Source: Octopus sinensis
Taxonomy: Eukaryota
Length of the DNA stretch: 64,000 nucleotides
Direction of reading: 5' to 3'
Assembly: GCF_006345805.1 (NCBI RefSeq)
Contig: NC_042998.1
Span: 154,628,001 to 154,692,000, forward strand
Of this stretch, positions 1,686 to 58,400 are shown piece after piece. Position 1 is the first letter of the stretch. Every line of letters starts with the position of its first letter. Made by a program: the position numbers and the translations under genes. The notes below the pieces were generated by a model. That model ran no database searches and was not told the DNA's origin. It saw nothing but the letters and a program-made list of their open reading frames with translations.

Positions 1686-4280
1686 TATCAACAAACCAGT
1701 TCAAAGATGGCTTTTATTCAAACTTTATTTCTGCTCGCCATCATCATCATCATCATTTAGCGTCCGCTTTCCATGCTAGCATGGGTTGGATGGTTCAACT
1801 GGGGTCTGTGAAGCCAGAAGGCTGCATCAGGCCCAGTCTGATCTGGCAGTGTTTCTACGGCTGGATGCCCTTCCTAACGCCAACCACTCCGTGAGTGTAG
1901 TGGGTGCTTTTTACGTGCCACCCGCACAGGTGCCAGACGGAGCTGGCAAAGGGCCACGAACGGATGGTGCTTTTACGTGGCACCGGCACGGGGGCCAGGG
2001 GAGGCTGGCAACGGCCACGAATGGATGGTGCTACGTGCCACCGGCACAGGGGCCAGGCGAGGCTGGCAACGGACACGAACGGATGGTGCTTTTATGTGCC
2101 ACCGGCACGGAGGCCAGTCGGGGCGGCGCTGGCAACGGCCACGATCGGATGGTTCGCTTAACCACAGCTGCAATTTCCATTGATGTTGATCGACTTCGAT
2201 TTTGGTTCTGCTTTCTGATATCTGATTTGATTTGGTTTGATTTTGATTTTGATTTGATTTTGATTTTCACTTGTCTCAACGGATCTTCACAAGTGGAGTT
2301 TTGTGTCCCAAGAAGGAAAGGTATGTAGGCCACAGGTTATGTTCTCACTAGTCTTGCCAGGTCTTCTCACGCACAGCATAATTCCATAGGTCTCGGTCTC
2401 TAGTCATTTCCTTGGTGAGACCTAAAGTTCGAAGGTCGTGCTTCACTACCTCGTCCCATGTTTTCCTGGGTCTACCTCTTCCACAGGTTCCCTCAACTGT
2501 TAGAGTGTGGCACTTTCGCACACAACTATCTTCAGACATTCTCGTCACATGACCATACCAGCGCAAACTTCTCTCTTGCACACCACAACTGATGCTTCTT
2601 AGGTCCAACTTTTCTCTCAAAGTACTTACACTCTGTCGATTATGAGGAATATAGCATCAGTAGTACTTTTCCCTGGCACGAACCCAAACTGCATCTCATC
2701 TAAGCTAATTCTCTCTCTTATTAGTTGGGCTATAACCCTCTCCGTGATCTTCATTACCTGATCCAGCAGCTTGATACTCCTGTAGTTATTTGTATCTAGA
2801 GCGTCACCTTTACCTTTGTAGCAGTTGACTATTATGCTGCTACACCAGTCATTGGGTATGACTCCTTCGTGTATCACCTGGTTAACTATACGGGTGACTA
2901 GGCTATAGCCAACACTACCAGATATTTTGAGCATCTCTGCAGTGATTCCTGATGGGCCAGGGGCTTTCCCTGTTTTTATGCTTGTAATTGCCTTAACTAC
3001 TAAGGAACTGTCAACTCGGATTGCTGGTCCCTCTGTTGGGTCGACATTCGGCAGACTCTCTTTATCCCATTCATTTTCCTCATTCAGCAACCTTTCATAG
3101 TGGCGTCCCCAAACCTCTCTCTTTGCATCCTCATTTAGCGCAAGTGAGCCGTCATCCTTGCGAACACATTTCTCTCCTACCACGTCACGATTCTCTCTCA
3201 CACACTGTCTTGCAATATGAAATACCTCAAGTCTTTCATCCTCATGGCGCAGAACATTGGCAAAATTTTTCTTATCTGTTTCCCCTCTGGCTAAATACAC
3301 CTGCCTCCTAGCTTCCCTTCTGGCAGTCTTATACACATCCCTGCTACCACCGTTCTTCCAGTCCTTCCAAGCCTGTTTCTTTTGTCTAATAGCCCTGTCA
3401 ACAATATTGTTCCACCACCACGTTATTTTGGGTCTTGAGGGGACTTTGCACCAGCCACAGATCTGGTCAGTGGCTTTCAGCAGGTTGTCCCTTAGAAGCA
3501 TCCAGTTATCTTCTACCCCATGTGTAGTTATACCCCCTTCTATTTCATCGAAGGCTTCAAGTAACATGTCTCTAAATCTCTGTCCATTTGCAGGGTCTTT
3601 AAGCTTCCAGACCCTTCTTCTCCATGTTGGTCGTCCTCTTAGTCCTGATCCTAAAGTCACTAACTACCAGTCTATGTTGTGGGGTACATTCTTCGCCTGG
3701 GAAGGTTTTGGCATTTATAAGTAGCCATCTTTCCCTTTTTCTGGCAAGGATGTAGTCGATTTGGCTTGTATGCCGGCCCGATCGGTAGGTGACCAAGTGG
3801 CTTGTCGGTTTCCTGAAGTTAGTGTTGCCAACCATAAGACTATTCGCATCACAGAACTCCAGCAGCCTGGTTTCCTCCTCGTTGTGGGAACCATAACCGT
3901 AGTCTCCATGTACGCCATGGAAGCCCCCAGCATATTGTCAACATGCCCATTGAAGTCACCAGCCACAAAGAGAAGGTCCCTGTCATTCGTCAGTGAGGTG
4001 GTCTGCAGTAGGGTGTCATAGAAACGGTCTTTCTGTCCATCAGGTAGCCCTGGCTGAGGGGCATAGGCCGATATAATAGTTGCTAAACTATGATGGAGCC
4101 ATCTAATCCATTAATCATTAAGATGTGTTGTTTTATATTAAGTAAGGACAGTATCCATCTATCAATGTCATTTGACACTGCCATATTTTCGTACTCAATA
4201 CAAAATAAGATATCTATATTTTCATCTAATATTTGCTATTGTAGAAAGGAATTAATGATAGGATATTATAATTCATAACA
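1686..4280 (-). repeat. 3' LTR of the gypsy element, split into 1686-1740 and 4095-4280 by an RTE insertion
   Basis: The two pieces joined reproduce the 7997-8246 repeat. Begins TGTTATGAATT on the minus strand at 4280. Confidence 0.75.
1741..4094 (-). mobile_element. RTE-clade (BovB-like) LINE, 5'-truncated and internally deleted
   Basis: APE remnant (AGDFNGHV, SQIDYIL), then KAPGPSG, YKGKGDAL, NYRSIKLLDQVMK, QFGFVPGKSTTDAIF (2626-3660). C-terminal RWYGHV..GRGRPRKTW (2348-2620). 3' UTR with tandem repeats and a (GAT)n tail at 1741-1756. Confidence 0.92.
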
Positions 4281-7200
4281 GTCTTCTGTGCTGAGTGAAA
4301 AGTTAGTTACAGTGCATTCAAAACGTATAGCCTTTTAGATAAAAAGCATCTTAATAACTCGTCCTGATCTCCATTTTCTCCTCTCTTTGGCATTTTGTTA
4401 CCCGTATTATCTTCATTCAGGTATTCTTTGCAAGTTTTGCTACCCTTATTATTCTCTTCCAGCCATTCTTCACCAGTTGCTAATCTGTTCATGTTTCCAG
4501 GTACCAGACTGTGAGCTCCATTTCTTTGTTGATACATTGCTTCTAATGGTGTACTGTCAGAGTCGGTTCCTTGTTGATTTATTATTTTTGTATTTGGTTG
4601 TTCTATATCAAATTCTGTTTTTGTAGTTAACCCTGGTTATGTTTGTGTGTTATCTTTGCTTCCTTGATTGAAAGATTGTCCTGGAGTGAGAGTCTGTCAA
4701 CACTGTATCTATTTGTCAGTTTCCAAATTGTACATGTGCAAAGTGGGGGAAAATAGTCTCCAACAATTAAACATTTTCTATAAGTGGATCCCCCTTATTT
4801 CTGAGATGTCAGCGATGCAGTATTGTGCTTCTCATATTCTGGAGGAATTCAGGTAGAATGGTTCCCACTGTCGATGATCTTGAAAATTTAAACATTCACT
4901 CATGAGGGTTTGTGTTGGTAGCTGTACAGAGGAATGCTCTCATGGCTGATAGTATCATGAGAAGAACTGTCAACCATTGTTTTTTATCTAGTTGTAGTGA
5001 ACTAAGTGCTAGTTTTATGGTCTTCATGAGAGTACCGTTGGTCCTTTCACAATGGCCATTGCTTTGCAGTCAATATGGAGATGTTCTAGTTTTTATTGTC
5101 CCATTAGCGTGAAGGAAGTCCTGGAGCTTCTTATCAAATTGGGTTCCTCTGTCAGAGTGGATACAACTTGGTGATCCAAACAATGAAAAGATGCTGAGCA
5201 GGGGGGTAGTTACTGTTTCGGTACTTATGTCTTTGCATGGGTACCTTGAGTACTCATCAACTGTTACCAATAAGTAGCGGTATTGTGTGGTAGGGGACCA
5301 ACAACGTCAGTGGAGAGGCACTCCCAAGATCTTGATGCCTGTATTAATTGACCTATAAGGGGTTTGTGGAAGCAGGGTTTGAGCTTGTTGCATGTAGAGC
5401 AAGTGAGTGTCATTTCGCGGATTTTGTTGAAGAACTGCAGGTTTTGTGCTTTACAGTAGTGAAGTTGGCGGGTTACTCTTGAGTAGCCCAGTTGTTTGTG
5501 AAGAGTTATGAGTGTTGTAGTGTCTCTTGTTGCTGCACATCTTGATAGCGCATCTGCTGCTTTGTTTTGAGTTACTGGGCTATTGGAGATTGTATAATTT
5601 ATGTCTGAGAGGTCCAAACGCCAGCGTATAATTTTACATTTTTGATTTTTGATGTCCTTGCTTATTGAAGATCATCACTACTGAGCGTTGATCGGAGATG
5701 ATGTTGCAGTATGGGGAAACATGCATTAGGTGGTGCTATTTGTGGCAACATTCTATGATTGTGCAGGCTTCTCTCACGACGATGGATTGGTAAAGGGACC
5801 TTGAGTAGAAGGCCACTGGCCATCCTTCTTTTGATAGTGACCCTCATAAGGCTAGGTTGGAAGCATCTGTTTCAATAGTAATTGGTATTCCAGGTTGTGG
5901 ATCGGCAAATATGGCATTTACCAATGCAGTCTTTAGAGATGCGATTGCTGTTTTAGCTTCTTTTGGCAGTCCTGCTTTGTTGAAATTCTTTATGCTCTTA
6001 TGCTCTTGGTAAGTCTGGAGCACTTAGGTATCCACTTAGCACAATATGCAAAAATGCCTATTATTTAACTTTTCTCAATGTTCTTGGTTCTGGTATATCT
6101 AGTAGAGATTGATACCTTTTAGGGTCAGGTTTTATTGTTGAATTTCCAATAATATGTCCAAGGAAGCTGATTTGATTTTGAGAGAATTGACTCTTGCTCT
6201 TATTGATGGTCATGCCAGATATTTTGGTTGCCTGGATAAATCTGAGTTTATTGTCATGTTCATGATGATTTTTGCCAGCTATGATGATGTCATCTAGATA
6301 GGCAAAGGTTTTCTGAAGATTGTTTCTTTTTATGAATTCATCCATGACACGCTGGAAAATTGCTGCATACAACCAAATGGGAGGTGTTTAAAATCGTACA
6401 GTCTCCCCCCTGCTTTGAATGCAGTCAGTTTATAGTCTTTGAGTAGGAATTCCACATGGTGATATGCAGCTGTCTTTCTATGTTGCTGAAAATCTTGTTT
6501 GCTGCTACTTTATTTAGAAGATCATCGATCTGGCGGCAGATTGTATGCATCTAGTTGTATGTAGATATTTATAGTGTTCGAGTAGTTGATCACCAGTCTT
6601 TTCTTCCTTCCATTAGATGTCACAAAGCATTGAGCTCGCCAGGGGCTACAGTTTTCCTGAATTATTCCTCTGAAAGTAACCTGTCTATTTCATGCTTAAT
6701 AAACTCTGTGTCTTGAAGTTGTTGAAATTGGTTTGAGCTTAGAGGCTTTTATGCCAGGAAGTAGTTTGTACGTGGTGCATTTTAGGCTTGACATGCAGAA
6801 TGACATAGGTTTCAGTGTGCCCTTGAAGTTAATAGTAATTGTTGAGTGTTGACTGAGGATATCGATTCCAATGATGACTGGAGCTACAAGGTAGTTGACT
6901 GCAAGAAAATTAGCATTATATGCATTATTTCCCAGTTGTAGTTTGCTACTGAATTTGCCTTTAATTTCTAGTGCTGTATTGTTAGCCAAGTTAACTTTTT
7001 CTGGGCAAATATGATCTAACACATGTTATTCTCCCCCATACATTTATGGAAGTATCCACTCTCACCTCTCCTGACCCACTGACTATATCCTAGACTGTAA
7101 GAAGATTGAACTTCTATAAATGTCCTGTTAGAACCTGTGTTAAGAAGGGCTTGTGTATTGTTGTCCCATATTTTAATGGTTACCAGTTGTCCTGTACCAT

Positions 7201-14204: not shown

Positions 14205-14415
14205 CTGTGGCTTTGTGCCTGTCTTTGCCCCCCACCACTGCTTGGTAACTGGTATTGGTGTGTTTATGTTCATGCAACTTAGCGGCGTAGTAAAAGAGGT
14301 CAATAAAAAAATGGACCGGGCATAAAAAAGAAAGAACTGGTGTCGATTTGTTCAATTTAAATTCTTCAAGGCAGTGCCCCAACATGGTCATAGTCTGATG
14401 ACTGTAAAAGATAAA
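14205..14415 (+). mobile_element. SINE core and tail (5'-truncated)
   Basis: tggtgtgtttatgtt..caacttagcgg core followed by the tail ggcagtgccccaacatggtcatagtctgatgactg. The same family recurs at ~54925. Confidence 0.7.
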
Positions 14416-22866: not shown

Positions 22867-24834
22867 TCATGTGAATTCAACAGAACTCACTTGAATCTTA
22901 ATTGCTTTTACTGTATATATATATGATTGATTGATTGATTGATTGATTGATTCTAGTTTCAGCTTATGAGCTGTGGCCATGCTGGGGCACCGCCATTTGG
23001 TGTTGCTACTTGGTTTCACTTCATGGAGGGGCTTTCTAGCAACTGCTATTTGGTGCATGAGAGAGTTCGATGCAGCTGCCCTCATCTGCCCCTCCTGTCG
23101 TGAAGTTGGTTCATCTGGGACACCTGACAGGAAGAGATCCAGCTTCATTTTAAAGACATCTGTATCCACCCCATGCAGGTCTCTCAGGTTCTTCGGGAGG
23201 ATATTGAAGAGCTGTGGGCCTCGGAAGCCCAGGCTATCACAGAATCTTGTCCTACATCTTGATGGCAGGTTTGGAGTCCTAGGCACCACACAGTGGCGCC
23301 CAGTTCTGGCATTTGCGTAACTCTTGATGCCAAAGTTCAGGACACTTCCCTCCAGGATCTTCCAGATGTATATTATGGCATATCTTTCCCGCCTACGCTC
23401 CAGGGAATATAATTTTAATCTCTTGAGTTTTTCCCAGTAGCTTACATTCTGCATAGAGGCTATCTTCTTCGTGTAGCTTCGTTGGATCGCCTCAAGTTCT
23501 GTGATCAACTTGACACTGGATGGTGACCATAGCTGAGAGCAATAGTCAAAGTGGCTTAGGACAAGTGTCTTCCAGAGGACCATCATGGTTTCTTGTTCTC
23601 TTGTTCTAAAGGTTCTAAGAATCCATCCAGCCAGCCGTCTACATTTCATTGTCAGTTTAGCAACATGTACATGAAAGGTCACGTCATCACTCATGTGAAT
23701 ACCCAGGTCACGCACTGATTGTGCCTCTGGGATTGCAATCCCTCCGGATCCAGTGTATTCATTGGGTATTGCATTCAGTTTTGCATGCTGATAGTATAAA
23801 GCTTGAAACTTTCCAGCATTGAACTGCATGCTATTCTTTTCAGCCCACTTGTATATTTCGTCCAGCTCACATTGCAGGTGTTTAGTGTCCTCAGGGTTCT
23901 GTATTGCCTGTGAAACTTTTGTATCATCTGCATAACTTGTGATCGTGGCTCTCTGCGTGGCTGAGGGCATGTCTGAGAGGGCCATTATGAACAGTAGTGG
24001 TCCCAGAACAGTGCCTTGCGGAACACCGCTCACTATTTGTGTGTTAATGGAGGTGGCCCCATTGGCTACTACCACCTGACTTCTATCCTTCAGAAAGTCA
24101 TGAAGCCATTCTCCCAGTTTTCCAACTATGTTGAGATCACGCAGTTTGTGACATATCATTCCATGATCGACTTTATCAAAGGCCTTTGCAAAGTCGAGAT
24201 ATATCACTTCCATATTTGAGTGGTTGAGCAGCCGTTTCAGCACCCAGTTATAGTGTTGTAGGAGCTGAGTTAAACAGCTTCTCCCTGGTTGGAAACCATG
24301 TTGGGTGTCGGGCAGCAAGTCATTCTCTTCAAGGAAGGTGATCAGCTTCCTTCTGACTATTCGTTCCATGACCTTGCTGATGTGTGAGGTCAGAGAGATA
24401 GGTCTATAGTTCTTGGCTTCCGCTCTGCTACCTCCTTTATGAATGGGGCATATTTTACCTTCCTTCAGTTTTCCTGGAAGTTTGCCAGCTGCAAGGAAGC
24501 TCTGAAAGAGGAACTGCAGTGGTCTTGCTAGGACTCTCTTACATGCTTTTAGGAGGATTGCCGGGAATCCATCAGGGCCAGTAGCTGAGTCTGTTTTCAT
24601 TTCATCTATAGCCTTGGTTACATCGTCTTCCTTTATATCGATGTAATCTATCGTCGCCGCCTCTGATTTTATATCTGCAGTGGTAAAAAAGTCAGTTGGA
24701 TTGGTGATTTGGAGATGCCCAAGGGGTGGAGTGAAAACACTCTTGAATTGCTCATTCAGTATTTCACTTACCCTCATTGGTTTTCCTGTAAGTGTGCCAT
24801 CCTTTTCGAGGAGTGGCCCTATTCTACAGTGCAC
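22867..24834 (-). CDS. LINE ORF2 reverse transcriptase domain (655-aa uninterrupted frame)
   Basis: All non-LTR RT motifs are present. The frame runs through the 3' tail, probably because a small indel near ~23030 removed the natural stop: the 28765-28893 copy has TGA there. Confidence 0.9.
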   Translation of the reverse strand: MHCRIGPLLEKDGTLTGKPMRVSEILNEQFKSVFTPPLGHLQITNPTDFFTTADIKSEAATIDYIDIKEDDVTKAIDEMKTDSATGPDGFPAILLKACKRVLARPLQFLFQSFLAAGKLPGKLKEGKICPIHKGGSRAEAKNYRPISLTSHISKVMERIVRRKLITFLEENDLLPDTQHGFQPGRSCLTQLLQHYNWVLKRLLNHSNMEVIYLDFAKAFDKVDHGMICHKLRDLNIVGKLGEWLHDFLKDRSQVVVANGATSINTQIVSGVPQGTVLGPLLFIMALSDMPSATQRATITSYADDTKVSQAIQNPEDTKHLQCELDEIYKWAEKNSMQFNAGKFQALYYQHAKLNAIPNEYTGSGGIAIPEAQSVRDLGIHMSDDVTFHVHVAKLTMKCRRLAGWILRTFRTREQETMMVLWKTLVLSHFDYCSQLWSPSSVKLITELEAIQRSYTKKIASMQNVSYWEKLKRLKLYSLERRRERYAIIYIWKILEGSVLNFGIKSYANARTGRHCVVPRTPNLPSRCRTRFCDSLGFRGPQLFNILPKNLRDLHGVDTDVFKMKLDLFLSGVPDEPTSRQEGQMRAAASNSLMHQIAVARKPLHEVKPSSNTKWRCPSMATAHKLKLESINQSINQSYIYTVKAIKIQVSSVEFT

Positions 24835-24880: not shown

Positions 24881-26016
24881 TTATGTTTCTATAGCCCAGG
24901 CTTCTTTGTCTGCTCCTTCTTTTTCATGGGAGAGTTGCAGACATTTTTCGATTTCCAACAGTTTTATTTTTAGGCGGGACTTTTCACTGCTTTCAATCTG
25001 TTTGTTTAGGCGATTTGAAAATTTCGTACGCCGTCTCATTAAAATTTCCTCTCTCTGGGGATTTTGTTCTTGTGTACAGTGGCCTTTCTCTCTGGGACAC
25101 ATTTGTAGCATATGGCTTGCATTACAGACATGAATTGTTGAAGTTTCACGTCGATGTCTGGCGAGGAGAGACATTTAGGCCAGTTTTGTTTGAGGATCTC
25201 TTTCTCAATTTGTTTCCAGTTTGCCTTATGGTAGTTCAAGCTGGAAAGATTTTGAGGGTTTCTTGTAGGCTGCATGTCCGTGCTCTCTTTTGGCCCGTAC
25301 ATGGTCAGCTCTATCATGTTGTGATCCGAGAGTAGTGTCGGTGTCACTTTCACATTATGGATGAGATCCATGTCATTTGTGAAGCAGAGATCCAGTGTGT
25401 TACCTGCCCTGGTTGGTTGGAGTATTACCTGCTCCATGTACAGGGTGTTGATGAGGTTCAGGAGGGACCTCGCCTGTCCTCGTTCACATCTTGTCATTCC
25501 TGGGAGAGAAAGGCCCTCGGGCCATCTGACATTGGGCAGATTGAAGTCTCCCATAAGAAGCACACCTATGTGTTGTTCTAATGTGGTTAGAATTTCTTCT
25601 ATTTTTTAAAGGCAGTCTTCAAACTTGCCCACATGGCTTGGGGCATCTGGAGGGCGATATGTAGCACACACAACTACATCAAGTTGCCTAATATGTACAA
25701 TTAGTGTGTCACACACCGAGTTTGAGTATGACAAGAGGACCTGGGGTGTGAGGTCCTCACGGATGTACATAGCAACACCTCCATGACTCCTTTCTTTCCT
25801 GTCAGTCCGTAGTACAGCATACTGTGGTATGTGTAACTCCGCATCTGCTATGTCCGGTTTCAGGTGCGTTTCTGTAAGTGCTATGCATAAGGCTTGATTG
25901 CATGCAACAAAGTCTCTCAGGAACGGGATCTTTGTCCTGTTACTGAGTGTTTGCAGTCCTCTGATGTTCAGTAGGAGCATCGAGGTGAGGTGTACGTTGT
26001 TGCCGGCGGTGTCCAT
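24881..26016 (-). pseudogene. LINE ORF2 apurinic-like endonuclease and linker, broken into several frames
   Basis: Pieces 26016-25606, 25563-25039 and 25174-24881 carry APE motifs. Confidence 0.88.
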
Positions 26017-26092
26017 CCTGTGTCTGTTTGCTGTGGTGGTCTGGTATATAGTGGGTAGTCCCACCTGCGGGCTTGGGTTTGATGAAGCCAGG

Positions 26093-26872
26093 TCAGCTGC
26101 TGTACAATCTTTGTGCCATGCACAAAAAAGATTGTTGCTCAGCAGCTGCTCTTTCGACAACATCATGTTGGCGGTTTGTGGCGCGCACAACATCTGCGTA
26201 CCTCCGCTTTGGGGCAGGTGGTGCGTGGTCCATCCCTTTTCTTTGTGTTGATGGTTTGTCCATCTGCCTCGTGTCTCTGTGGCAGGGTCCCGATGTGCAA
26301 AGCGGCAGCCTGCACCTTCCTTTCCATGCCAGCAGGAACCTCTCAGGTAGAACATACACACCCGTGTGCGCTGTTTGGTTCCATCCTTTGCGGTTCCACT
26401 TCTATTCCTGGTTGTTTCACCTTTGGTCCTGCTTGAGCTTTTTCTTTTCCTTTAGCTCTTCCAGTCCTTCTTTTAGTTCTTCTTCCTCCCTCTACCTCTT
26501 CACCGGGTTCCCGTCTCCATGGCCCTTGCTGCCGGTTGGAGAACTTGCACCTGGGTTCACTTCCCGGGCAGGTTTCTCATTCAAAACCTCCCCGGACGTC
26601 CACCAGGTGGGGGTGACTTCTTTCATCGTCTCCATTCTTGCCATCTTTGCCCCGCTCGTTCTCAAAGATGGCATCAAGTGCGCCAATGTGCGACCGTACA
26701 GCGCATATGAGCGCACGAATTCCTGTCTCTTTTGCTCCATCTGAACCGCTGTCCTCTTGTAGCCTCTGCTCTTCAGCGCAGCCGCAATCACCTCGCTAGG
26801 GCTATCTCCGCCGGCGCACTCCCATGCTTGTACGAATAAATCCAGCTCGTCAGGTCTCCATGCTCTGGACAT
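26093..26872 (-). pseudogene. LINE ORF1: Myb/SANT-like domain, charged linker, C-x7-C-x8-C-x3-H zinc finger
   Basis: MSRAWRPDELDLFVQAW...IAAALKSRGYKRTAVQMEQKRQEFVRSY. In-frame TAG at 26494-26492, then a frameshift in an A-run. CMFYLRGSCWHGKEGAGCRFAH at 26358-26293. The probable C-terminus (PKRRYADVVR...SFLCMAQRLYSS*) lies in the 26093 frame. Confidence 0.75.
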
Positions 26873-26924: not shown

Positions 26925-28050
26925 AGGAAGATATTAAGGCTAATTAGAAGATAGAGTACTTGAAAAAGAAATATTAACAATATTAAAGTTTGCGGGTAAA
27001 AACGTTATTTAATCTTAAGGCTAATTAGGGGATAGAGTATCTGAAAATGTATTAGCAATATTAATATTATATTAGAGTGTGGGTAAAAACGTTGTTTAAT
27101 CTTAAGGCTAATTAGGAGATAGAGTATCTGAAAATATATTAGCAATATTAATATTATATTAGAGTGTGGGTAATATTAAACGTTATTTAATTTAATCTTA
27201 AGGCTAATTAGAAGACAGAGTATCTGAAAAATTATTAACAATATTAAGCAATATTAACCGTTATTTAATTTAATCTTAAGGCTAATTAGACGTTATTAAT
27301 ATTAAACGTTATTTAATTTAATCTTAAGGCTAATTAGAAGATAGAGTATCTGAAAATATATTAGCAATGTTAATATTATATTAGAGTGTGGGTAATATTA
27401 AACGTTATTTAATTTAATCTTAAGGCTAATTAACAATAATTATTAACAATATTAAACAATATTAAACGTTATTTAATTTAATCCTAAGGCTAATTTGACG
27501 GTATCAATATTAAACGTTATTTAATTTAATCTTAAGGCTAATTAGAAGATAGAGTATCTGAAAAATTATTATATCGAGAACAGATATTGAAAATGTAAAC
27601 AAACAAAGATTATATTAGAGTGTGGGTAATATTAAGCGTTATTTAATTTAATCTTAAGGCTAATTAGAAGATAGAGTATCTGAAAAATTATTAACAATAT
27701 TAAACAATATTAAACGTTATTTAATTTAATCTTAAGGCTAATTAACAATAATTATTAACAATATTAAACAATATTAAACGTTATTTAATTTAATCTTAAG
27801 GCTAATTAGACGTTATCAATATTAAACGTTATTTAATTTAATCTTAAGGCTAATTAGAAGATAGAGTATCTGAGAAATTATTATATCGAGAACAGATATT
27901 GAAAATGTAAACAAACAAAGATTAAAAATTATATTAGAGTGTGGGTAATATTAAACGTTATTTAATTTAATCTTAAGGCTAATTAGAAGATAGAGTATCT
28001 GGAAAATTATTATATCGAGAACAGACATTGAAAATGTAAACAAACAAAGT
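26925..28050. repeat. AT-rich tandem array of ~50-120-bp modular units
   Basis: About 14 copies of the core aaacgttatttaatttaatcttaaggctaatta, combined with modules gaagatagagtatctgaaaa, ttatattagagtgtgggtaatatt and cgagaacagatattgaaaatgtaaacaaacaaag. Confidence 0.92.
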
Positions 28051-28479
28051 GACGATCGCAACTTTAACTAAGATGTGGGCCTAAGTGAAGGATAAAATAG
28101 AATAATAAATAAAATATGAAATAGATGAAAGTGATACTTAATCCAAACAAGGTGGTCTGGGTTTTTTTTTTTTGGTTTACGGGATTTTTTTCAGGAGAGA
28201 TGCTTCTTTTTTCTTTCTTGCAGGAGATAACTTGATTCAGTTATTTTTGCACCATGTGCGTTTCGGCGAAAATGAAAATACTGTGTATATGTATATATTA
28301 TATATATATTTTAAAAATATTTTTAACCAAAGTGTTGTAGTGATCTCTATGACTTAGAGTTTTCGTTTTGCAACTACAGTGGTTATTTCGCCGATCTATG
28401 CAAACTTTTCACAGAGAAGAGGCAACGTCTCTCTCTGTTGAAAACGGAACCGGATATGTATATATATATGTATATATAT

Positions 28480-28518
<39 letters not shown>

Positions 28519-28584
28519 GTATATATATGTATGAAAAAACAAGTCAAAATAGAAAATGCTAAAATAATTTTATAAAGAACATTT

Positions 28585-28622: not shown

Positions 28623-28764
28623 TAACGATTAAATAATTAAATTTAGAAAAATTAGAAGAAAAGTTTTTTTAAAGGAATATTTGTATAGTTTTCAAATATA
28701 AGTGGCATTCTGCCTTTCTCTGACTCCCTTGTTTGCACTTGTGTGTTCGAGGTCGAACACACAT

Positions 28765-28893
28765 CGAACTCTCTCATGCACCAAATGGCAGTCGCTAAAA
28801 AGCTTTCGTGAAGTAAAACTGTGTAGCAACACCAAGTGGCGGTGCCCCAGCATGGCCACAGCTCAATGAGCTGAAACTAAAATCAATCAATCA
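28765..28893 (+). mobile_element. 3'-end fragment of the same CR1-clade LINE family
   Basis: tcgaactctctcatgcaccaaat...ggcggtgccccagcatggccacagctc..gagctgaaacta(aatc)n matches the reverse complement of 22924-23065. Confidence 0.88.
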
Positions 28894-28894
28894 T

Positions 28895-29099
28895 ATGTAT
28901 ATATATATATATATATATAATAACATATACATATATCTATATATATATATATATATATGGATATATATATATATATAATTTATGTATATATATATATAAT
29001 ATATATTTATGTATATATATATATATATTATGTATATATATATATTTATATTTATATTATGTATATATATATTTATGTATATATATATATATTTATGTA

Positions 29100-29132
<33 letters not shown>

Positions 29133-29462
29133 TTATGTATATATATATACGTATATATGTAATATATTTTATAGATATATATATATATATCTATATATTT
29201 ATTGTATATAGATATCTATATATATATTATAGTATATATATCTATTTATGTATATGTATATTTTATTTTATATATTATGTATATATATATATATATCTAT
29301 ATTTTGTATAGGTATATATATATATATATGGTATATATAGAGATATATATGTATAGATATATATAGTCTAATATATATACATATATATAATATATATATA
29401 GATATGTTATAATATATATATATATTTATATATTAGTATGTATATATATATATATATATTTA

Positions 29463-29498
<36 letters not shown>

Positions 29499-29687
29499 TA
29501 TGTATATATATATATATATATATATATTTATGTATATATATATATATATTACATATATATATATATATTTATGTATATATATAATATATATTACATATAT
29601 ATTATATATATTATGTATATATATATATATTATGTATATATATATATGTATATACGTATCTATATATATATATAGTATATACGTATC

Positions 29688-29720
<33 letters not shown>

Positions 29721-29745
29721 TATATACATATATATATATATAGGC
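28895..29745. repeat. Degenerate (TA)n microsatellite block
   Basis: About 850 bp of interrupted TA repeats. Confidence 0.97.
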
Positions 29746-29959: not shown

Positions 29960-32290
29960 ATTGCTATTCGTTGGATAGGGTATATTTTAGCATGTTGGGA
30001 AGTTTACCACATGCAAGGAAACGCTGAAAGAGTATCAGCCGAGGGTCTGCAAGGGCCTTTTTATGTCTTTAAGAGAACAGCTGTGTGTCCATCTGGGCTT
30101 GTTGCTGAGTTTGATCTCATTTCATCAATGTCCAATATTACATCCTTCTGTTATGTTGATTTAATAAATGGTTGCCTCTTTTCCAAATAGATTCATTATA
30201 TTGAAAAGCTCCCTCGACTTGTTTATTTGCATATTTTCCAGTGGAGAAGTGAAAACACTTCAAAATTGTTTATTTAGTGCTTCACTTATCTTCCCCAGAT
30301 CTGCAGTTAGCGAGCCATTTTTACCAAATAGTGGCCCAATCTGATAGTGTTCTGAGGCAGACTCCTTTGCTGTCTAGAGGGCTTTAAGATTTCTTTTTAT
30401 ATTCTCGACTGCCCAGATTTCTCTTTCTTCTCTATGGAAGATTTTGAGTTTATTTTCTATCTCAAAGAGTTCCTCTGTTAGGTGGGATTTCACACTGTCA
30501 TTAAGGTGTTTGTTTAAATGATTTGAGAACTTTATTCTCTGCCACATGAGTATTCTCCTGTCTTGGGGAATGATGTTTTTGTGTCTATTGGTTCCCTTCC
30601 CTGGGACATATTTAATGCTTGCATTATTGATATGAATATATTGAGTTTCATATCTATGTCTTGCATAGAGAGGCTTTTACGCCAGTCCTGCTGGAGTATC
30701 TGTTTTTCAAATGACTTTCAGTCAGCCTTATAGAAATTTAGGCTGGATAGGGTTTGAGTGCCATCTGTGTGGAGTTTAGTTAATTCCAGGCCATACATTG
30801 TCAGTTCTATCATGTTATGGTCTGTGAATATTGTCGGTGATATATTTATGTTGTGGATAATTTCTACATTGTTTGTAAAACAGAGGTCCAGGATATTTAT
30901 GTGCCTGGTTGGAGAGAGTATGATCTGCTCCATGAATAACATTTTTGTAAGATCAAGTAGAGATTCTGCTTGATTTTCGTCTTTGTGCATCATTCTTGGG
31001 GTTATATTGCCATCAGTCCACCTGATGTTGGGTAAGTTGAAGTCACCCATCAGGAATATAATAGTACATTGATCCAATTGTGTTAGTGCTTACTTTATTG
31101 CACTGAGGCTTTCCTCAAATTTTCCATCATGATTTGAGCCATCAGGTGGGTGACACAGTATGTGAATATCACTATATGAAATTGTTTTAGATGTACTATG
31201 AGTGTGTCAAAAACTGAGTTTGAGTTTGATAACAGGGTTAATGGTGTAACATCTTTGCGGATATACATTGGAACTCCACCGTAACTTCTTTTTTTTTCTG
31301 TCAGTACGGAAGGTAGCATACATACATTGGTATGTGTATCTCCACATCACTTATGTCTGCAGATGTGTTTCTGTAAATGCAATGCCTATAGCTTGATTAC
31401 ATGCAGAAAGATTCTTCAGGTGCTGAATTTTGCATTTGCTGTTGTTAAGCAGTATGCCACTTATATTCATCAGTAGAAATGGCATTGGTGTTGGTATGTT
31501 GGGTGGTTTGGTGGCAGTGGTGGCCAACCAGGGTCCATCAATTATGGCGGTCTTGTGTGCAAGGGTGCATAGCTCAGCTTTGTTTGTAGCCACGACAACT
31601 GTTGCACTATTTCCTGTGCCACGCTTAAAAAAGTTCTGGCCTTCTTTTCTGCAGGTTTGTGCTGGAATATAGATTTTTCTAAGTGTGGTTGTTTCCTTCG
31701 TTGGGTGAGTGATGGCTTTTGATTCAGCATTGGGTGCACAAAGCAGCAGTTGGTCCCACTTTCTCCATGCCAGCAGAAACCTTTTTTGTGGAACTTGTAG
31801 ATAGACCTTTTTCTTTGAGAGGGTGTGGTTTGGGTTTTTATTTTAGAACCATTTTCACTTGGCTTTCGTCTGCTGTCTTCTTTTTCTAATTCTACATTGC
31901 TGCTTTGGGAGGTGTTGGGACTGTGGTTGTTTGCACTTTTCTCATTTCCTTCCTTGTTGAGCTTTTTAACTTTGGCATTGATGTTGTCACTGCTTTCTGT
32001 GTGCGGTTTCTCACAGGCAGTGTCATCATTATTTTGCCACTTTCGAAAATGATGTCCAGTTTTTCTAGGTGTGGCTGTATGAGCACATAAGATCAGATGA
32101 ACTCATTCTTCTTCTGCTCTATTTGTGCCACTGATCTGGAGAAACAATTGCTCTTCAGGTCAGCTGTAATTAAATTATTTGGCGAATCAGTTTCTGCAAT
32201 TTCCCTGGCACATAGGAACAATCCTATTTCTGTAGACTTCCAATTTCTTATCTTCCTTGTGGTGTATGGTTGTGGTGGTGCGTGCAGTTA
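29960..32290 (-). mobile_element. CR1-clade LINE (copy 2), older and lacking most of RT and the 3' end
   Basis: Myb-like RNWKSTEIGLFLCAREIAETDSPNNLITADLKSNCFSRSVAQIEQKKNEFI*SYVL (32248-32081). Finger YKFHKKGFCWHGESGTNCCFVH (31799-31734). APE (LMNISG, AFTETHL, MGDFNLP, NILDLCF, TDH) and RT start (DEMRSNSATSPDG) are all homologous to copy 1. Confidence 0.9.
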
Positions 32291-32559
32291 GTTTTTGAGT
32301 GCAAGTATGGAGAGAGCAGAGGTGTGATGCGAGAAAACATGAAGGACAGTGAGAAGTTGGGTAGGTGAGGGGGAAAGCAAGCTGGGGGAGGGAAGAGACC
32401 AAAGGAGGTGATGGAGAGATGTGAGGGGACAGACAGGAAAATTGAGCCAGAGAAGGGAGCAGAGAGGAGATTGAGAGGGAAGCAGAGATGAGGGAGGTAG
32501 TATTGCAGGGGAGAGGAGGAGAGGATGGGGATTGGGTTGTAGGTGTGGGTGGATAGTGA

Positions 32560-43501: not shown

Positions 43502-43891
43502 GTAAGATATTCTTTTATTCTTTCACTGGTTTCAGTAAATGAACTCCAGCCATGCTGGGGCTCCAATTTCAAGGGTTTTTTTGGTGATTATATTGATCCT
43601 AGTAATTTGTTTGGTATTTATTTTATTGATTTTGTAAGACGCAGAATGCATATCGGGTATTGGCTTAAATATAAGTAATTAAAAGTTCTGATATGTTGAT
43701 ATAAAAATATATATGATAGACTTCTGCACAGTTTCTGTATGCAAATTTCACTCAATCACAAGGTATTGGCAGAAGAGATTTATCCACAGTACTATACAGC
43801 ATAGTGGGATCCATGCATATCATGTAATTTGCACACCTGTGTAATTTACACAAGCAATTTTCAGGATTAAAAAAATTGTTAAAAAAGCTTA

Positions 43892-55399: not shown

Positions 55400-58300
55400 C
55401 ACTTATATGCACACACGTGCACGTACACGCGACCGATCCTTTCAGTCGCCGGAAGTCTATATATAGACAATATAGCCGGAAGACTATATTGAGGCCTAGC
55501 AGTCGGCAGGTGGATGTCTCCGGGATCGTTCGGGAAGATAGCTGAGACGTCAGCCAAAGACGAACTCAGCCCGGCGGGTAGCCGCCGCCTTCACGCTGCC
55601 TTGCTTTCACCGTTCTATTTCGCGCCGCATTGTGCCAGCGGCAGGCTGCGCCATGCACCCGGTGCTCCGCCGCGCTACCGTGCCGGATATCGAAAGAACG
55701 AACCTAAGCTAACGGTATCCCCCACGTACGCGAGGACGTAGCCGCGAACGATGCCGGATCTCTGTCATCAAATACACGCGGTCAATACAGCGACGTGGTC
55801 CGTCCCGAATATTCCCAAAAGATAACAACTACGGCTAGTATAGGTAGAGCCCGACAGTGGCAGGGTTTGCGGAGTCGCCCCGAGCTTCGCTGCGCTACCA
55901 TGCCCGACCTATTAAGAACGAATCAAAGCTCGAGGTGTCGCCCACGTACCATGCCCGATATCGAAAGGTACATGCGGTCGATACAGTGACGTGGTCCATC
56001 CCGTAAATTCCCGATGCCGTCAGTCACCGGGCATGTACCGGGTAAATACAACGACGTGGTTCGACCCGTAAGTTAGAAAAATCAGACTATATTGAGGTCT
56101 AGGTGGATGTCTCCGGCATCGTGCGTCAAGATGCCTTACACGTCATCCTAAGACGCCGTCAGCCCGGCGGGTTACCACCTTCTTCACGCCATCTTGCTTT
56201 CACGTTTCGACTAATCGCTGCAGCGCCGCCAGCGGCAGGCCTGTTCTGGTCGCCCGTTATTCCGCCGCGTTACCGTGCCCGATATCGAAAGAACAAACCT
56301 AAGCTCGCGTGATCGCCCACGTACACTTGGATGTAGCCGCGATTGTTGCCGAAAGGCTGTCACGAGATAAAGGCGGTTGATACAGCGACGTGTTCCTTCG
56401 CGTAAATTCCCGAAAGATGGCAACGACGGCTTGTATATGTAGGGGCAGCCTGCGGCTGGCTTGCGCCAGTCACCCGTTGATCCGCCGCGCTACCGTGCCC
56501 GATATCGAAAGAACGAACCTAAGGTATTGGTATCGCCCACGCACACGTGGACGTACCCGCGAGAGATATCGGAAGGCTGTCACGAGATACATGCGGTTGA
56601 TACAGCGAAGTGGTCCGTCCCGTAAATTCCCGAAAATGACAACTGCGGCTAGTATAGGTAGGGGTCGCCATTCGCCCGGACCTACGCATCGTTACCGTGC
56701 CCGATCTAGTAAGACCGAATCGAAGCTCGCAGTATCACAAACGTACACGTGGACAGATCCCTTCAGTCGACGGGAGTCTATGGCGATATGCACCGGGTAA
56801 ATACAACGATGTGGTCCAACCCGTAAGTCAACGGAAACAGACCCGTGACCTTACGGGTCGGCCCACGGTGGATAGTCACGCTCCAGGTGACCGTCGCACC
56901 CCAAGGGTGTCCAGACTATATTCATTGCTAGCAGTCGGCAGGTGGATGTCTCCGGCATCGTTCGTCAAGATGCCCGACACGTCAGCCTAAGACGCCATCA
57001 GCCTGTCGGGTGGCCGCCGCCTTCACGGCATCTTGCTTTCACCTTTCAACTACGCGATTCGGCAGATGACAACTGCGGCTTTCTTTCCCTGTTCGACGAC
57101 GCGCCGCGGGCTCGCCAGCGGCAGGCCTTCGCCGGTCGCCCGTTGCTCCGCCGCGCTACCGTGCCAAATATCGAAAGCACGAACCGAAACTCGCGGTATC
57201 GCCCACGTGCGCGTGGACGTAGCCGCGACCGATGCCGGAACTCTGTCACGAGATAAAAGCGGTCGATACAGCGACGTGCTCCTTAGACTAAATTCCCGAA
57301 AGATGACAACTGCGGTTAGTATTTCTAAGAGCCGACGGCGGCAGGCCTGCACAAGTCGCTCGGAGCTTCGCCGCGTTACCGTCCCCGATATAGAAAGAAC
57401 GAATCGAAGGTAGCGCTGTTGCCCACGTACACGTGGACGTAGCTGTCAGTCGCCGGGAATCTGTGGCGATATGCACCTGGTAAATACAACGACGTGGACC
57501 GACCCGTAAGTTAACGGAAACAGATCCGTTAGCTGACGGGTCGGCCAACGCTGGATAGTCACGCTCTAGGTGACCGTCGCGCTCCAAGGGGGTCCAGACT
57601 ACATTGAGGCCTAGCATTCGACAGGTGGATGTCTCCGGGCTCGTTCGGCAAGATAGCTGAGACGTCAGCCTATGACGCCGTCAGTCCGGCGGGTGGCCGC
57701 CGCCTTCACGCCAATTTGCTTTCACCTTTCTTTCCCTGTTCGCAGCGGCAGGGCTGCGCCGGTCGCCCGTTGCTCCATCACGCAACCGTGCCCGATATCG
57801 GAAGAATGAACCTAAGCAAGCGGTATCGCCCACGTACGCTTGGACGTAGCCGCGACCGATGCCGGATCTCTGTCACGGAATACACGCGAGGTGCATAGCG
57901 CAACAGACTCAGGGCGACTGACGGGATCGGTTGCGGCTACGTCCACGTGTACGTGAGCGATACCGCTAGCTTCGATTCCTTCTTTCTATATCGGGCACGG
58001 TAGCACGGCGGAGCTCCGGGCGACTGGCGGAGGCCTGGCGTATGCCTGGCGCAGGCCTTGCGTAGGCCTGTCGCAAGCCTCTACCTATACTAGCCGAATA
58101 GTCGAACAGGGAAAACATGGCGCAAACCCACCTCTGGCGCCCCCTACCTATACTACCACCGCCTACACGCTGCCGTGCGTTCACCGATCGAATACGCGCA
58201 GGGGGTCCCAAGCGGCAGGCCTGCGCCGGTCGCCCCTTGCTCCGGCGCACTACCGTGCCCGATATCGAAAGATACAAGCGGTCGATACAGTGACGTGGTC

Positions 58301-58400
58301 CGTCCCGTAAATTCCCGAAAGATAACAAATGCGGCTCTTATAGGTAGGGGGTGACAGCGGCAGGCCTGCGCCAGTCGCCCGGAGCTCCGCCTCGTTAGCG
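55400..58400. repeat. GC- and CpG-rich tandem array with higher-order structure
   Basis: Subunit marker ccgtgcccgatatcgaaag every ~200-450 bp. Higher-order marker ggtggatgtctccgg at ~55510, 56103, 56941 and 57624. One inverted subunit at ~57915-58097. Confidence 0.88.

Follow-up and report, generated by a model that had tools for sequence, protein, structure and literature searches.

A Myb/SANT-like domain and a CCCH zinc finger in ORF1 of a CR1-like LINE family of Octopus: a probable new ORF1 type

INTRODUCTION

What protein does the first open reading frame (ORF1) of a decayed octopus retrotransposon encode, is that frame truly a part of the element, and has such a protein been described before? 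These questions are raised by a 64,000-nucleotide stretch of the Octopus sinensis genome (contig NC_042998.1, positions 154,628,001 to 154,692,000; the whole stretch is hereafter called the window, and all coordinates without another label are window positions). A preliminary description of positions 26093 to 26872, made from the sequence without database searches, had reported a long interspersed nuclear element (LINE) of the CR1 clade. Its ORF1 was said to begin with a Myb/SANT-like domain, to continue into a CCCH zinc finger, and to lie directly upstream of a second frame (ORF2) for an apurinic/apyrimidinic-type endonuclease (APE) and a reverse transcriptase (RT). The same description had proposed that this may be an undescribed class of ORF1 in which the ribonucleoprotein chaperone also binds DNA, for target tethering or autoregulation, and which was possibly captured from a Harbinger-type gene.

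No component of LINEs is less well understood than the ORF1 proteins. In a survey of 448 elements of the Jockey superfamily (PMC4120745), the ORF1 domains are mainly CCHC, RRM, and PHD, with esterase, transposase_22, and an unclassified type V also present; the defined types are RRM plus CCHC (type I), coiled coil, RRM, and CTD/transposase_22 (type II), PHD (type III), and esterase (type IV). The classification of the superfamily contains neither a DNA-binding-type module nor a CCCH module. A characteristic feature of octopus genomes is the expansion of their retrotransposons, and a speculative link between this expansion and the neural expression of LINEs has been drawn (PMC9115989); against this background, a lineage-specific innovation in ORF1 would be of organismal interest. 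LINEs of O. sinensis have been classified by their RT (PMC10294476), and a paper devoted to octopus LINEs covers RTE and Dong elements only.

RESULTS

N-terminal domain and CCCH finger belong to ORF1 throughout the family

We found that both the N-terminal domain (N-domain) and the CCCH finger truly belong to ORF1 of an APE-RT LINE, and that they do so throughout the family. The order N-domain, CCCH finger, APE, and RT is present in six copies: two in the window (copies 1 and 2), one on a metagenome contig (L002), a further one from O. sinensis (L003), and two from Octopus vulgaris (L004 and L005). The preliminary description had named the absence of the domain from other copies of this ORF2 as one outcome that would speak against it; instead, N-domain and finger occur together in six independent copies. 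In functional members of the family, ORF1 would consist of four parts, namely, a predicted three-helix domain of about 70 amino acids, a charged linker of variable sequence, a single CCCH finger, and a C-terminal segment marked by the motifs ..[KR]YADVV.. and ..SFLxMAQxIVxQLTWL...

The metagenome contig carries an intact ORF1 of 371 amino acids (protein P0025) with N-domain, linker, CCCH finger, and C-terminal segment, and this ORF1 is overlapped by an ORF2, read in a different frame, whose first domain is the APE. Proteins P0030 and P0015, like P0025, also read through the linker without a stop. We consider it likely that, in functional members of the family, ORF1 is one continuous protein of about 230 to 370 amino acids that overlaps the APE-RT ORF2 in another frame.

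Layout and decay of copy 1

All components named in the preliminary description, that is, the ORF1 peptide, the C-x7-C-x8-C-x3-H motif, and the APE-RT ORF2 downstream of them, could be located on the minus strand. ORF1 starts with an ATG at 26872-26870, and its peptide opens with MSRAWRPDELDLF (also written MSRAWRPDELDLFVQAWECAGGDSPSEVIAAALKSRGYKRTAVQMEQKRQEFV or MSRAWRPDELDLFVQAWECAGGDSPSEVIAAALKSRGYKRTAVQMEQKRQEFVRSYAL). The first open piece (26492-26872, 126 codons) is closed by a TAG at 26494-26492, the stop already placed at 26494. Within this piece, residues 1 to 72 (26657-26872) make up the N-domain, a predicted three-helix domain that resembles Myb/SANT domains of the trihelix type according to Pfam (PF13837), AlphaFold2 (AF2), Foldseek, and the family alignment. 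The linker that follows (26383-26656) is charged, A-rich, of low complexity, and poorly conserved, and it contains the stop and the first frame change. The CCCH motif CMFYLRGSCWHGKEGAGCRFAH lies at 26293-26358 and was found with tblastn and through sub-threshold Pfam matches to zf-CCCH, Torus, and zf-CCCH_PARP12. The conserved C-terminal segment (25980-26269), recovered with tblastn of intact P0025 against the window, overlaps the start of ORF2 and is split over two frames ("RRYADVV...SFLCMAQ" at 26269-26105 and "KIVQQLTWLH..." at 26111-25980).

ORF2 encodes an APE followed by an RT. Its N terminus and APE (MDTAGNN... from 26016) occupy 25039-26016 on the same strand (Exo_endo_phos_2, E = 2.4e−9; homologues P0001 to P0013), and an open RT piece of 655 amino acids, including the C-terminal "SLERRRERY..IIYIWKILEG" region, occupies 22867-24834 (RVT_1, E = 2.9e−30). 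The reading frame of the RT piece continues through the 3′ tail. This tail is preceded by the 3′ motif GGCGGTGCCCCAGCATGGCC and a hairpin, CAGC-TCATAA-GCTG-AAAC (22953-22995), both conserved among related 3′ ends, and consists of (ATCA)7, which reads as (TGAT)7 on the plus strand and leads into (TA)n (22924-22952). Taken together, the region under study is likely to be the 5′ part of a decayed copy, about 4 kb long, of a non-LTR (long terminal repeat) retrotransposon family of Octopus that is CR1-like (Jockey superfamily).

The reading frames of copy 1 were judged by aligning the intact relative P0025 to it with tblastn. Relative to P0025, ORF1 of copy 1 contains a single in-frame stop and a minimum of three frame changes, at least one more than the two frameshifts counted in the preliminary description. 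Its pieces fall into frame −1 (N-domain), frame −2 (CCCH finger, 26382-26212), frame −1 again ("RRYADVV..SFLCMAQ"), and frame −3 ("KIVQQLTWLH"). The CCCH finger of copy 1 shares the frame that runs into the APE (ORF 26361-25606), whereas in intact relatives the finger belongs to ORF1. ORF2 is also broken: it is interrupted by a single stop at 25605-25603 and by a double one near 25035, and its frame changes near 25040 and 24880. Copy 1 is a pseudogene.

A stop after the N-domain occurs in more than one copy, and we considered whether it is a conserved feature of a split ORF (ORF1a/ORF1b) or of programmed read-through. This possibility was rejected: the stops are TAG in copy 1, TAA in L003, and TGA in L004. 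Because these different codons lie at non-homologous positions in an A-rich linker, they represent independent decay and not a designed split of ORF1.

Sequence upstream of ORF1 also differs among copies. An AT-rich tandem array with 87-, 48-, and 32-bp periods around CTTAAGGCTAATTAG lies at 26931-28049, directly upstream of the ORF1 ATG of copy 1. We rejected the array as the 5′ untranslated region (5′ UTR) or promoter monomers of the element; it has no counterpart upstream of the other five copies and is probably a local satellite. A CT-rich stretch (TCTCTC...) is located just 5′ of the ORF1 start in L002 (1-74), L003 (about 6950-7035), L004 (about 5950-5995), and copy 2 (window about 32260-32400, minus strand), and this stretch is probably the 5′ UTR of the family. 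Copy 1 does not have it and may thus be 5′ truncated just above its ATG.

A second copy in the window and copies elsewhere

Copy 2 (29985-32260, minus strand) is diverged and 3′ truncated, with 65% nucleotide identity to copy 1. Its parts are the N-domain (32260-32081), a CCCH-like motif (31802-31734), the APE (31479-30613), and the start of the RT (30349-29985). Amino acid identity between the two copies is 46% in the N-domain, about 34 to 65% across segments of the APE, and 44 to 62% in the RT start, and the linkers of the two copies cannot be aligned. Conservation of the N-domain is therefore on a par with that of the enzymatic domains and implies selection in the active lineages. The nearest relative of copy 2 is P0015 of O. 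vulgaris (67% over linker and finger). The ORF2 of L005 has 92 to 98% protein identity to the window ORF2.

Individual copies have features of their own. At 6001-7984 of L004, the N-domain and a partial CCCH finger are joined directly to the RT by an internal deletion that removed the APE. In L002, a TADT..VTPVL(Q/L)LNARG segment is duplicated in short tandem, and the frame of ORF2 (905-1320) is open for about 290 nucleotides upstream of the ORF1 stop, with no ATG before the APE. The latter hints that ORF2 of L002 is translated by frameshifting or by non-AUG initiation or reinitiation. Other subfamilies have an ATG for ORF2, including copy 1 (MDTAGNN at 26016).

The N-domain defines a protein family found in Octopus

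Using the two N-domains of the window as a query, we scanned 1.84 billion representative proteins with HMMER (E up to 0.001). Eighteen proteins matched, six of them at E up to 1e−10. All matches except P0029 align over their first 70 to 75 residues; P0029 (1,463 amino acids, repetitive, E = 2e−5) was judged a false positive due to low complexity, and the alignments do not include it. Three of the 18 (P0025, P0030, and P0015) span both the N-domain and the finger. Every member with a named source comes from O. vulgaris or O. sinensis, is labeled "hypothetical" or "uncharacterized," and has no Pfam annotation. The consensus of the family is W-x3-E[LI]-x5-AW-x2-A-x-G-x2-PN-x2-I-x-A-x-LK-x-NGF-x-RT-x-AQIERKK-x-EF-x-RSY-x-L-x-RPH-x3-LD-x-I. 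Its conserved positions are W17 in helix 1, the G37-[FY]38-x-R40-[TS]41 turn, K48, F52, and Y56; among the residues of the domain, Y56 never varies, and R40, E46, and K48 hardly do.

Word-indexed homology searches gave no match with the 126-residue ORF1 piece as the query, and a profile of 17 N-domain sequences returned family members only, none of which has a PF13837 annotation that would connect the family to annotated Myb proteins. With regard to the proposed capture from a Harbinger-type gene, a donor gene or protein outside the family was not detectable in these homology and profile searches, and no Harbinger transposase lies nearby.

The N-domain is likely Myb/SANT-like in fold

The top Pfam match of the window ORF1 is PF13837 (Myb_DNA-bind_4; 17.4 bits, E = 0.006), and this model is the only recurrent Pfam match in the family, found in 5 of the 18 members (best E = 0.004) and in the same register every time. 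The majority-rule consensus of the family has PF13837 as its sole match (21.9 bits, E = 2.4e−4). Both scores are below the curated gathering cut-off of the model (27 bits). In 10 reversed or shuffled consensus controls, no Myb model matched, and the best match to anything had E = 0.23. We conclude that the resemblance to Myb exceeds chance, because the N-domain is conserved in copy 2 and in the 18-member family while the controls are empty.

Alignment of the family profile to the DNA-binding domain of GT-1 (PDB 2jmw) with hhalign (P = 0.015) placed helix 2, the G-F-x-R turn, and helix 3 in register, pairing "IaaaLKsnGFsRT..QIErKK.EF.RSY" with "ISSKMREKGFDRS..CTDKWRNLLKEF" of GT-1. In this alignment, two elements of the trihelix signature, namely, the G-[FY]-x-R-[ST] turn and K..[FL]...[YF] in helix 3, are set against GFDRS..K..L...F of GT-1. 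AF2, run on the family alignment, predicted helices at residues 7-19/20, 26-35, and 42-71, the third reaching residue 83 in a 126-residue model. Mean pLDDT was 85 for the 73-residue domain; in the 126-residue model, values of 90 or higher prevailed over much of residues 1 to 60. The prediction has the form of a three-helix bundle in which helices 2 and 3 make a helix-turn-helix and helix 3 is long.

Compared with the PDB by Foldseek, the predicted domain matched the MYB domain of PHR1 (probability, 0.98; TM score by query/target, 0.58/0.69; root mean square deviation [rmsd], 2.4 Å), the MYB domain of RAD (0.92; 0.59/0.67; about 3 Å), GT-1 (0.85; 0.62/0.54; 3.2 Å), RTBP1 (0.75; 0.53/0.34; 2.4 Å), and the SANT domain of DMAP1 (0.72; 0.62/0.61; 3.2 Å). 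The compact matches of low rmsd are all Myb, SANT, or GARP domains, with ARR1 among them.

Several results weigh against assigning the N-domain to this group. The Myb/SANT Pfam scores are 17 to 22 bits against a cut-off of 27, and the Foldseek E values (0.3 to 1.8) are not significant. EF-hand proteins are also among the Foldseek matches, at an rmsd of 5 to 14 Å, and three-helix bundles are common. In sequence searches of the PDB, neither the single protein nor the family profile found a Myb protein; the only match of these searches, ribosomal protein S8 (E about 0.6 to 0.8), was rejected as spurious. The second and third Trp of classical Myb repeats are replaced (I29 and K/R49), and the long third helix could equally serve oligomerization. 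In view of both sides, we regard a Myb/SANT-like fold of the N-domain as likely, and homology to the trihelix/Myb_DNA-bind_4 group, which fails the curated Pfam threshold, as probable, not proven. The Myb/SANT-like reading of the preliminary description is the best one by both sequence and predicted fold, although every score that supports it is short of formal significance.

The zinc finger is CCCH-like with a long central spacer

The residues CKFFxNGTCWHGxxGxGCRFxH(P) are conserved in P0025, P0030, and copy 1, and the motif is also present in L004. Aromatic residues after Cys1, a Gly before Cys2, and a terminal C-x-F-x-H give the finger a CCCH-like character. Measured against the canonical pattern, C-x7-8-C-x4-6-C-x3-H, its Cys2-Cys3 spacer of 8 residues is longer. 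All four ligands are present in four of the seven copies compared.

Against the CCCH assignment stand the scores of the zf-CCCH model (PF00642), 13.6 to 14.6 bits for a cut-off of 20.5, and those of Torus and zf-CCCH_PARP12, also sub-threshold (E = 0.025 to 0.07 for the three models in the window). Cys1 is missing from the other three copies, where it is F or Y (L003, P0015, and copy 2), and P0015 also lacks Cys2. Each of these Cys substitutions is one nucleotide away from TGY. The loss of ligands may represent decay or the loss of the finger in a subfamily.

ORF2 and the 3′ ends point to a CR1-like LINE

Top PDB matches of the RT were LINE-1 ORF2p (2e−19) and R2 (1e−15). In a reference panel of four labeled mollusc sequences (PMC10294476, Data S2 and Table S7), the RT was closest to the CR1-labeled sequence (42% identity, 171 bits), followed by L2-2 (35%, 128 bits), Nimb (30%, 115 bits), and Tx1 (22%, 52 bits). 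A CR1-like assignment within the Jockey superfamily is reasonable; as a clade name in the strict sense, CR1 would be provisional, being the nearest label among four sequences only.

We compared the 3′ ends at window positions 22924-22995 (minus strand) and 28841-28893 (plus strand) with those at L003 10859 and 12583, L005 1099, and L001 4333 and 5541. They share the motif GGYGGTGCYCCAGCATGGCC, a hairpin, AAAC, and then a tandem tail that is specific to the subfamily and is (ATCA)n, (TTTAAGGA)n, or (GTAAAAGA)n, not poly(A). The hairpin is kept by compensatory changes (CAGC..GCTG, CAGTC..GACTG, GGCC..GGCT, and CAGCC..GGCTG). A conserved stem-loop followed by a tail of short tandem repeats in place of poly(A) is typical of CR1/L2-type LINEs.

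By raw count, the tail runs directly into (TA)n at 7 of about 10 3′ ends. This adjacency could be due to a target preference, a composite tail, or an octopus genome rich in (TA)n. One of these 3′ ends belongs to a solo fragment of the same family at 28762-28893 (plus strand, opposite in orientation to copy 1), with an (ATCA)n tail into (TA)n. Matches to the 3′ motif with two to three mismatches and hairpin-like sequence, but with no adjoining ORF2, occur at 14373-14389 (plus strand) and 43548-43564 (minus strand); these may be short interspersed nuclear elements or tails of other LINEs that share the recognition stem-loop.

Other features of the window

Two very long (AT)n microsatellites are found at 28893-29742 (about 435 units) and 28454-28532 (about 40 units). 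The larger one lies about 240 bp beyond the 3′-truncated end of copy 2 and abuts the solo fragment. A fragment of the RT of another, distantly related LINE lies at 2665-3000 (minus strand; 31% amino acid identity to residues 72 to 186 of the RT piece). At about 56000-58400 is an island with a GC content of 0.58, versus about 0.25 to 0.35 around it. Repeated ORF peptides such as RRATVPDIERTNR occur there on either strand and point to a GC-rich tandem repeat or satellite. Scanning the entire window against Rfam gave no match.

DISCUSSION

Is the combination new?

Neither Myb, SANT, nor CCCH occurs in the text of the 448-element survey (PMC4120745), and a 2026 survey of the CR1 group does not mention them. 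Full-text literature searches for an ORF1 or a LINE with Myb, SANT, or CCCH returned nothing relevant. Conversely, the domains of the established types (RRM, CCHC, PHD, esterase, and transposase_22) had no Pfam match at E up to 10 in the ORF1 pieces of the window or in P0025, P0030, and P0015. We suggest that the Myb/SANT-like domain and CCCH finger together are probably a new ORF1 type in a CR1-like LINE. The claim of an undescribed ORF1 class is thus in keeping with the Jockey-superfamily survey and the full-text literature, and we retain the word "undescribed" provisionally.

Alternative explanations

The Myb-like frame might be a gene of its own, or a piece of a different transposon such as Harbinger, that lies by chance beside a 5′-truncated LINE. 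In copy 1, the N-domain frame is cut off by a stop and frame changes, and Octopus gene models annotate the N-domain as a small protein standing alone, both of which would fit. However, the same order in six independent copies of at least two species, the continuous ORFs from N-domain to finger in P0025, P0030, and P0015, the overlap of ORF1 with ORF2, and the non-homologous positions of the linker stops effectively refute this explanation, to which we give hardly any credence. An architecture that has already been catalogued, for instance as an octopus CR1/L2 consensus in Repbase or Dfam whose domain annotation is lacking in the literature, deserves more weight, although we think it unlikely. 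Octopus genomes have been repeat annotated, LINEs of O. sinensis have been classified by RT (PMC10294476), and the consensus libraries probably hold this family. Yet the 448-element survey is without Myb, SANT, and CCCH, the full-text searches found nothing relevant, and the database proteins of the family are all "hypothetical" or "uncharacterized," with no Pfam domain.

Another alternative concerns the nature of the N-domain and not its place in the element. It may be a generic three-helix module for oligomerization or for assembly of the ribonucleoprotein (RNP), comparable to the coiled coil of L1 ORF1p, with a convergent likeness to Myb and no DNA binding. The sub-threshold similarity scores, the incomplete Trp triad, and the very long third helix of the AF2 models are what one would expect in that case. 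SANT-type domains, moreover, often bind proteins or histones and not DNA. On the other side, PF13837 is the sole repeated Pfam match and keeps a constant register, the turn G-[FY]-x-R-[ST] and, in helix 3, K..[FL]...[YF] resemble the trihelix signature, the shuffled controls are empty, and every one of the best compact structural matches is to a Myb, SANT, or GARP domain. On this evidence, we find a convergent helix bundle rather improbable; if the N-domain is nonetheless a plain protein-interaction bundle, the finding shrinks to a minor annotation.

Possible roles of the two modules

From the observed architecture, conservation, and predicted fold, we infer possible roles in RNA binding, DNA binding, and target choice. 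The ORF1 protein (ORF1p) would be the RNP-forming, nucleic acid-binding protein of the element, and its CCCH finger would bind RNA, the role that CCHC knuckles and RRMs have in other ORF1 types. Through its basic helix 3 (R40, K48, R/K49, and R54), the Myb/SANT-like domain may add a second contact to nucleic acid or chromatin, which would most likely be to double-stranded DNA at or near the integration site. Target tethering and autoregulation, both raised in the preliminary description, would be conceivable uses of such DNA binding. A specific form of this proposal, in which the CCCH finger holds the element RNA while the Myb/SANT-like domain recognizes double-stranded DNA at the insertion site, with (TA)n as a candidate, is in our view doubtful. 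If it were true, target choice would be delegated to ORF1p and not to ORF2p, and the family would represent a new ORF1 class convergent with the zinc finger-Myb arrangement of R2. A Myb/SANT-like and CCCH ORF1 throughout a family would be further evidence for domain shuffling in the evolution of ORF1, and the family would offer a testable case in which ORF1p, not ORF2p, might contact target DNA or chromatin.

Comparison with known systems

The nearest relatives of the N-domain in sequence and fold are GT-1 and other trihelix proteins with Myb_DNA-bind_4, with which it aligns in the register of helix 2, in the turn G-[FY]-x-R-[ST], and in a basic helix 3. It differs from them in a shorter loop between helices 1 and 2, in substitutions at the second and third aromatic positions, and in its sub-threshold score. 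To the same trihelix/Myb_DNA-bind_4 group belongs the second, Myb-like protein of PIF/Harbinger transposons. A Myb-like region is also found in TRAS and SART, the telomere-specific, APE-type LINEs of the R1 clade, where it lies in ORF2 between the endonuclease and the RT and aids target choice. The Myb-like region of TRAS and SART is thus inside ORF2 of another clade, whereas the octopus domain is in ORF1. We considered PMC2868851 as a source for a Myb-like domain of TRAS1 and rejected it, as "Myb" in that paper denotes the domain of human TRF1.

Compared with ORF1 types I to V of the CR1, L2, and Jockey lineages (Khazina and Weichenrieder 2009; Metcalfe and Casane 2014, PMC4120745), the octopus ORF1 is likewise a modular first frame upstream of an APE-RT ORF2, presumably with a similar role. 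It also combines a zinc-binding and a helical module, its domains vary by lineage in the same manner, and it overlaps ORF2. In place of the domains that define types I to IV, the octopus family has a Myb/SANT-like domain and a CCCH finger, which would make it either a member of the unclassified type V or a new type.

The nearest functional analogue is R2, whose N-terminal zinc finger and Myb domains bind target DNA and set the specificity of insertion (PMC11204384, PMC10499050). R2 and the octopus family both have a non-LTR protein that starts with a Myb-type three-helix domain and one or more zinc fingers. R2, however, carries the module within its one ORF, which also encodes the RT, and it has C2H2 fingers, a restriction-like endonuclease, and 28S rDNA as its target. 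The octopus family has its module in a separate ORF1, with a CCCH finger, an APE-type endonuclease, and no detected sequence similarity to R2.

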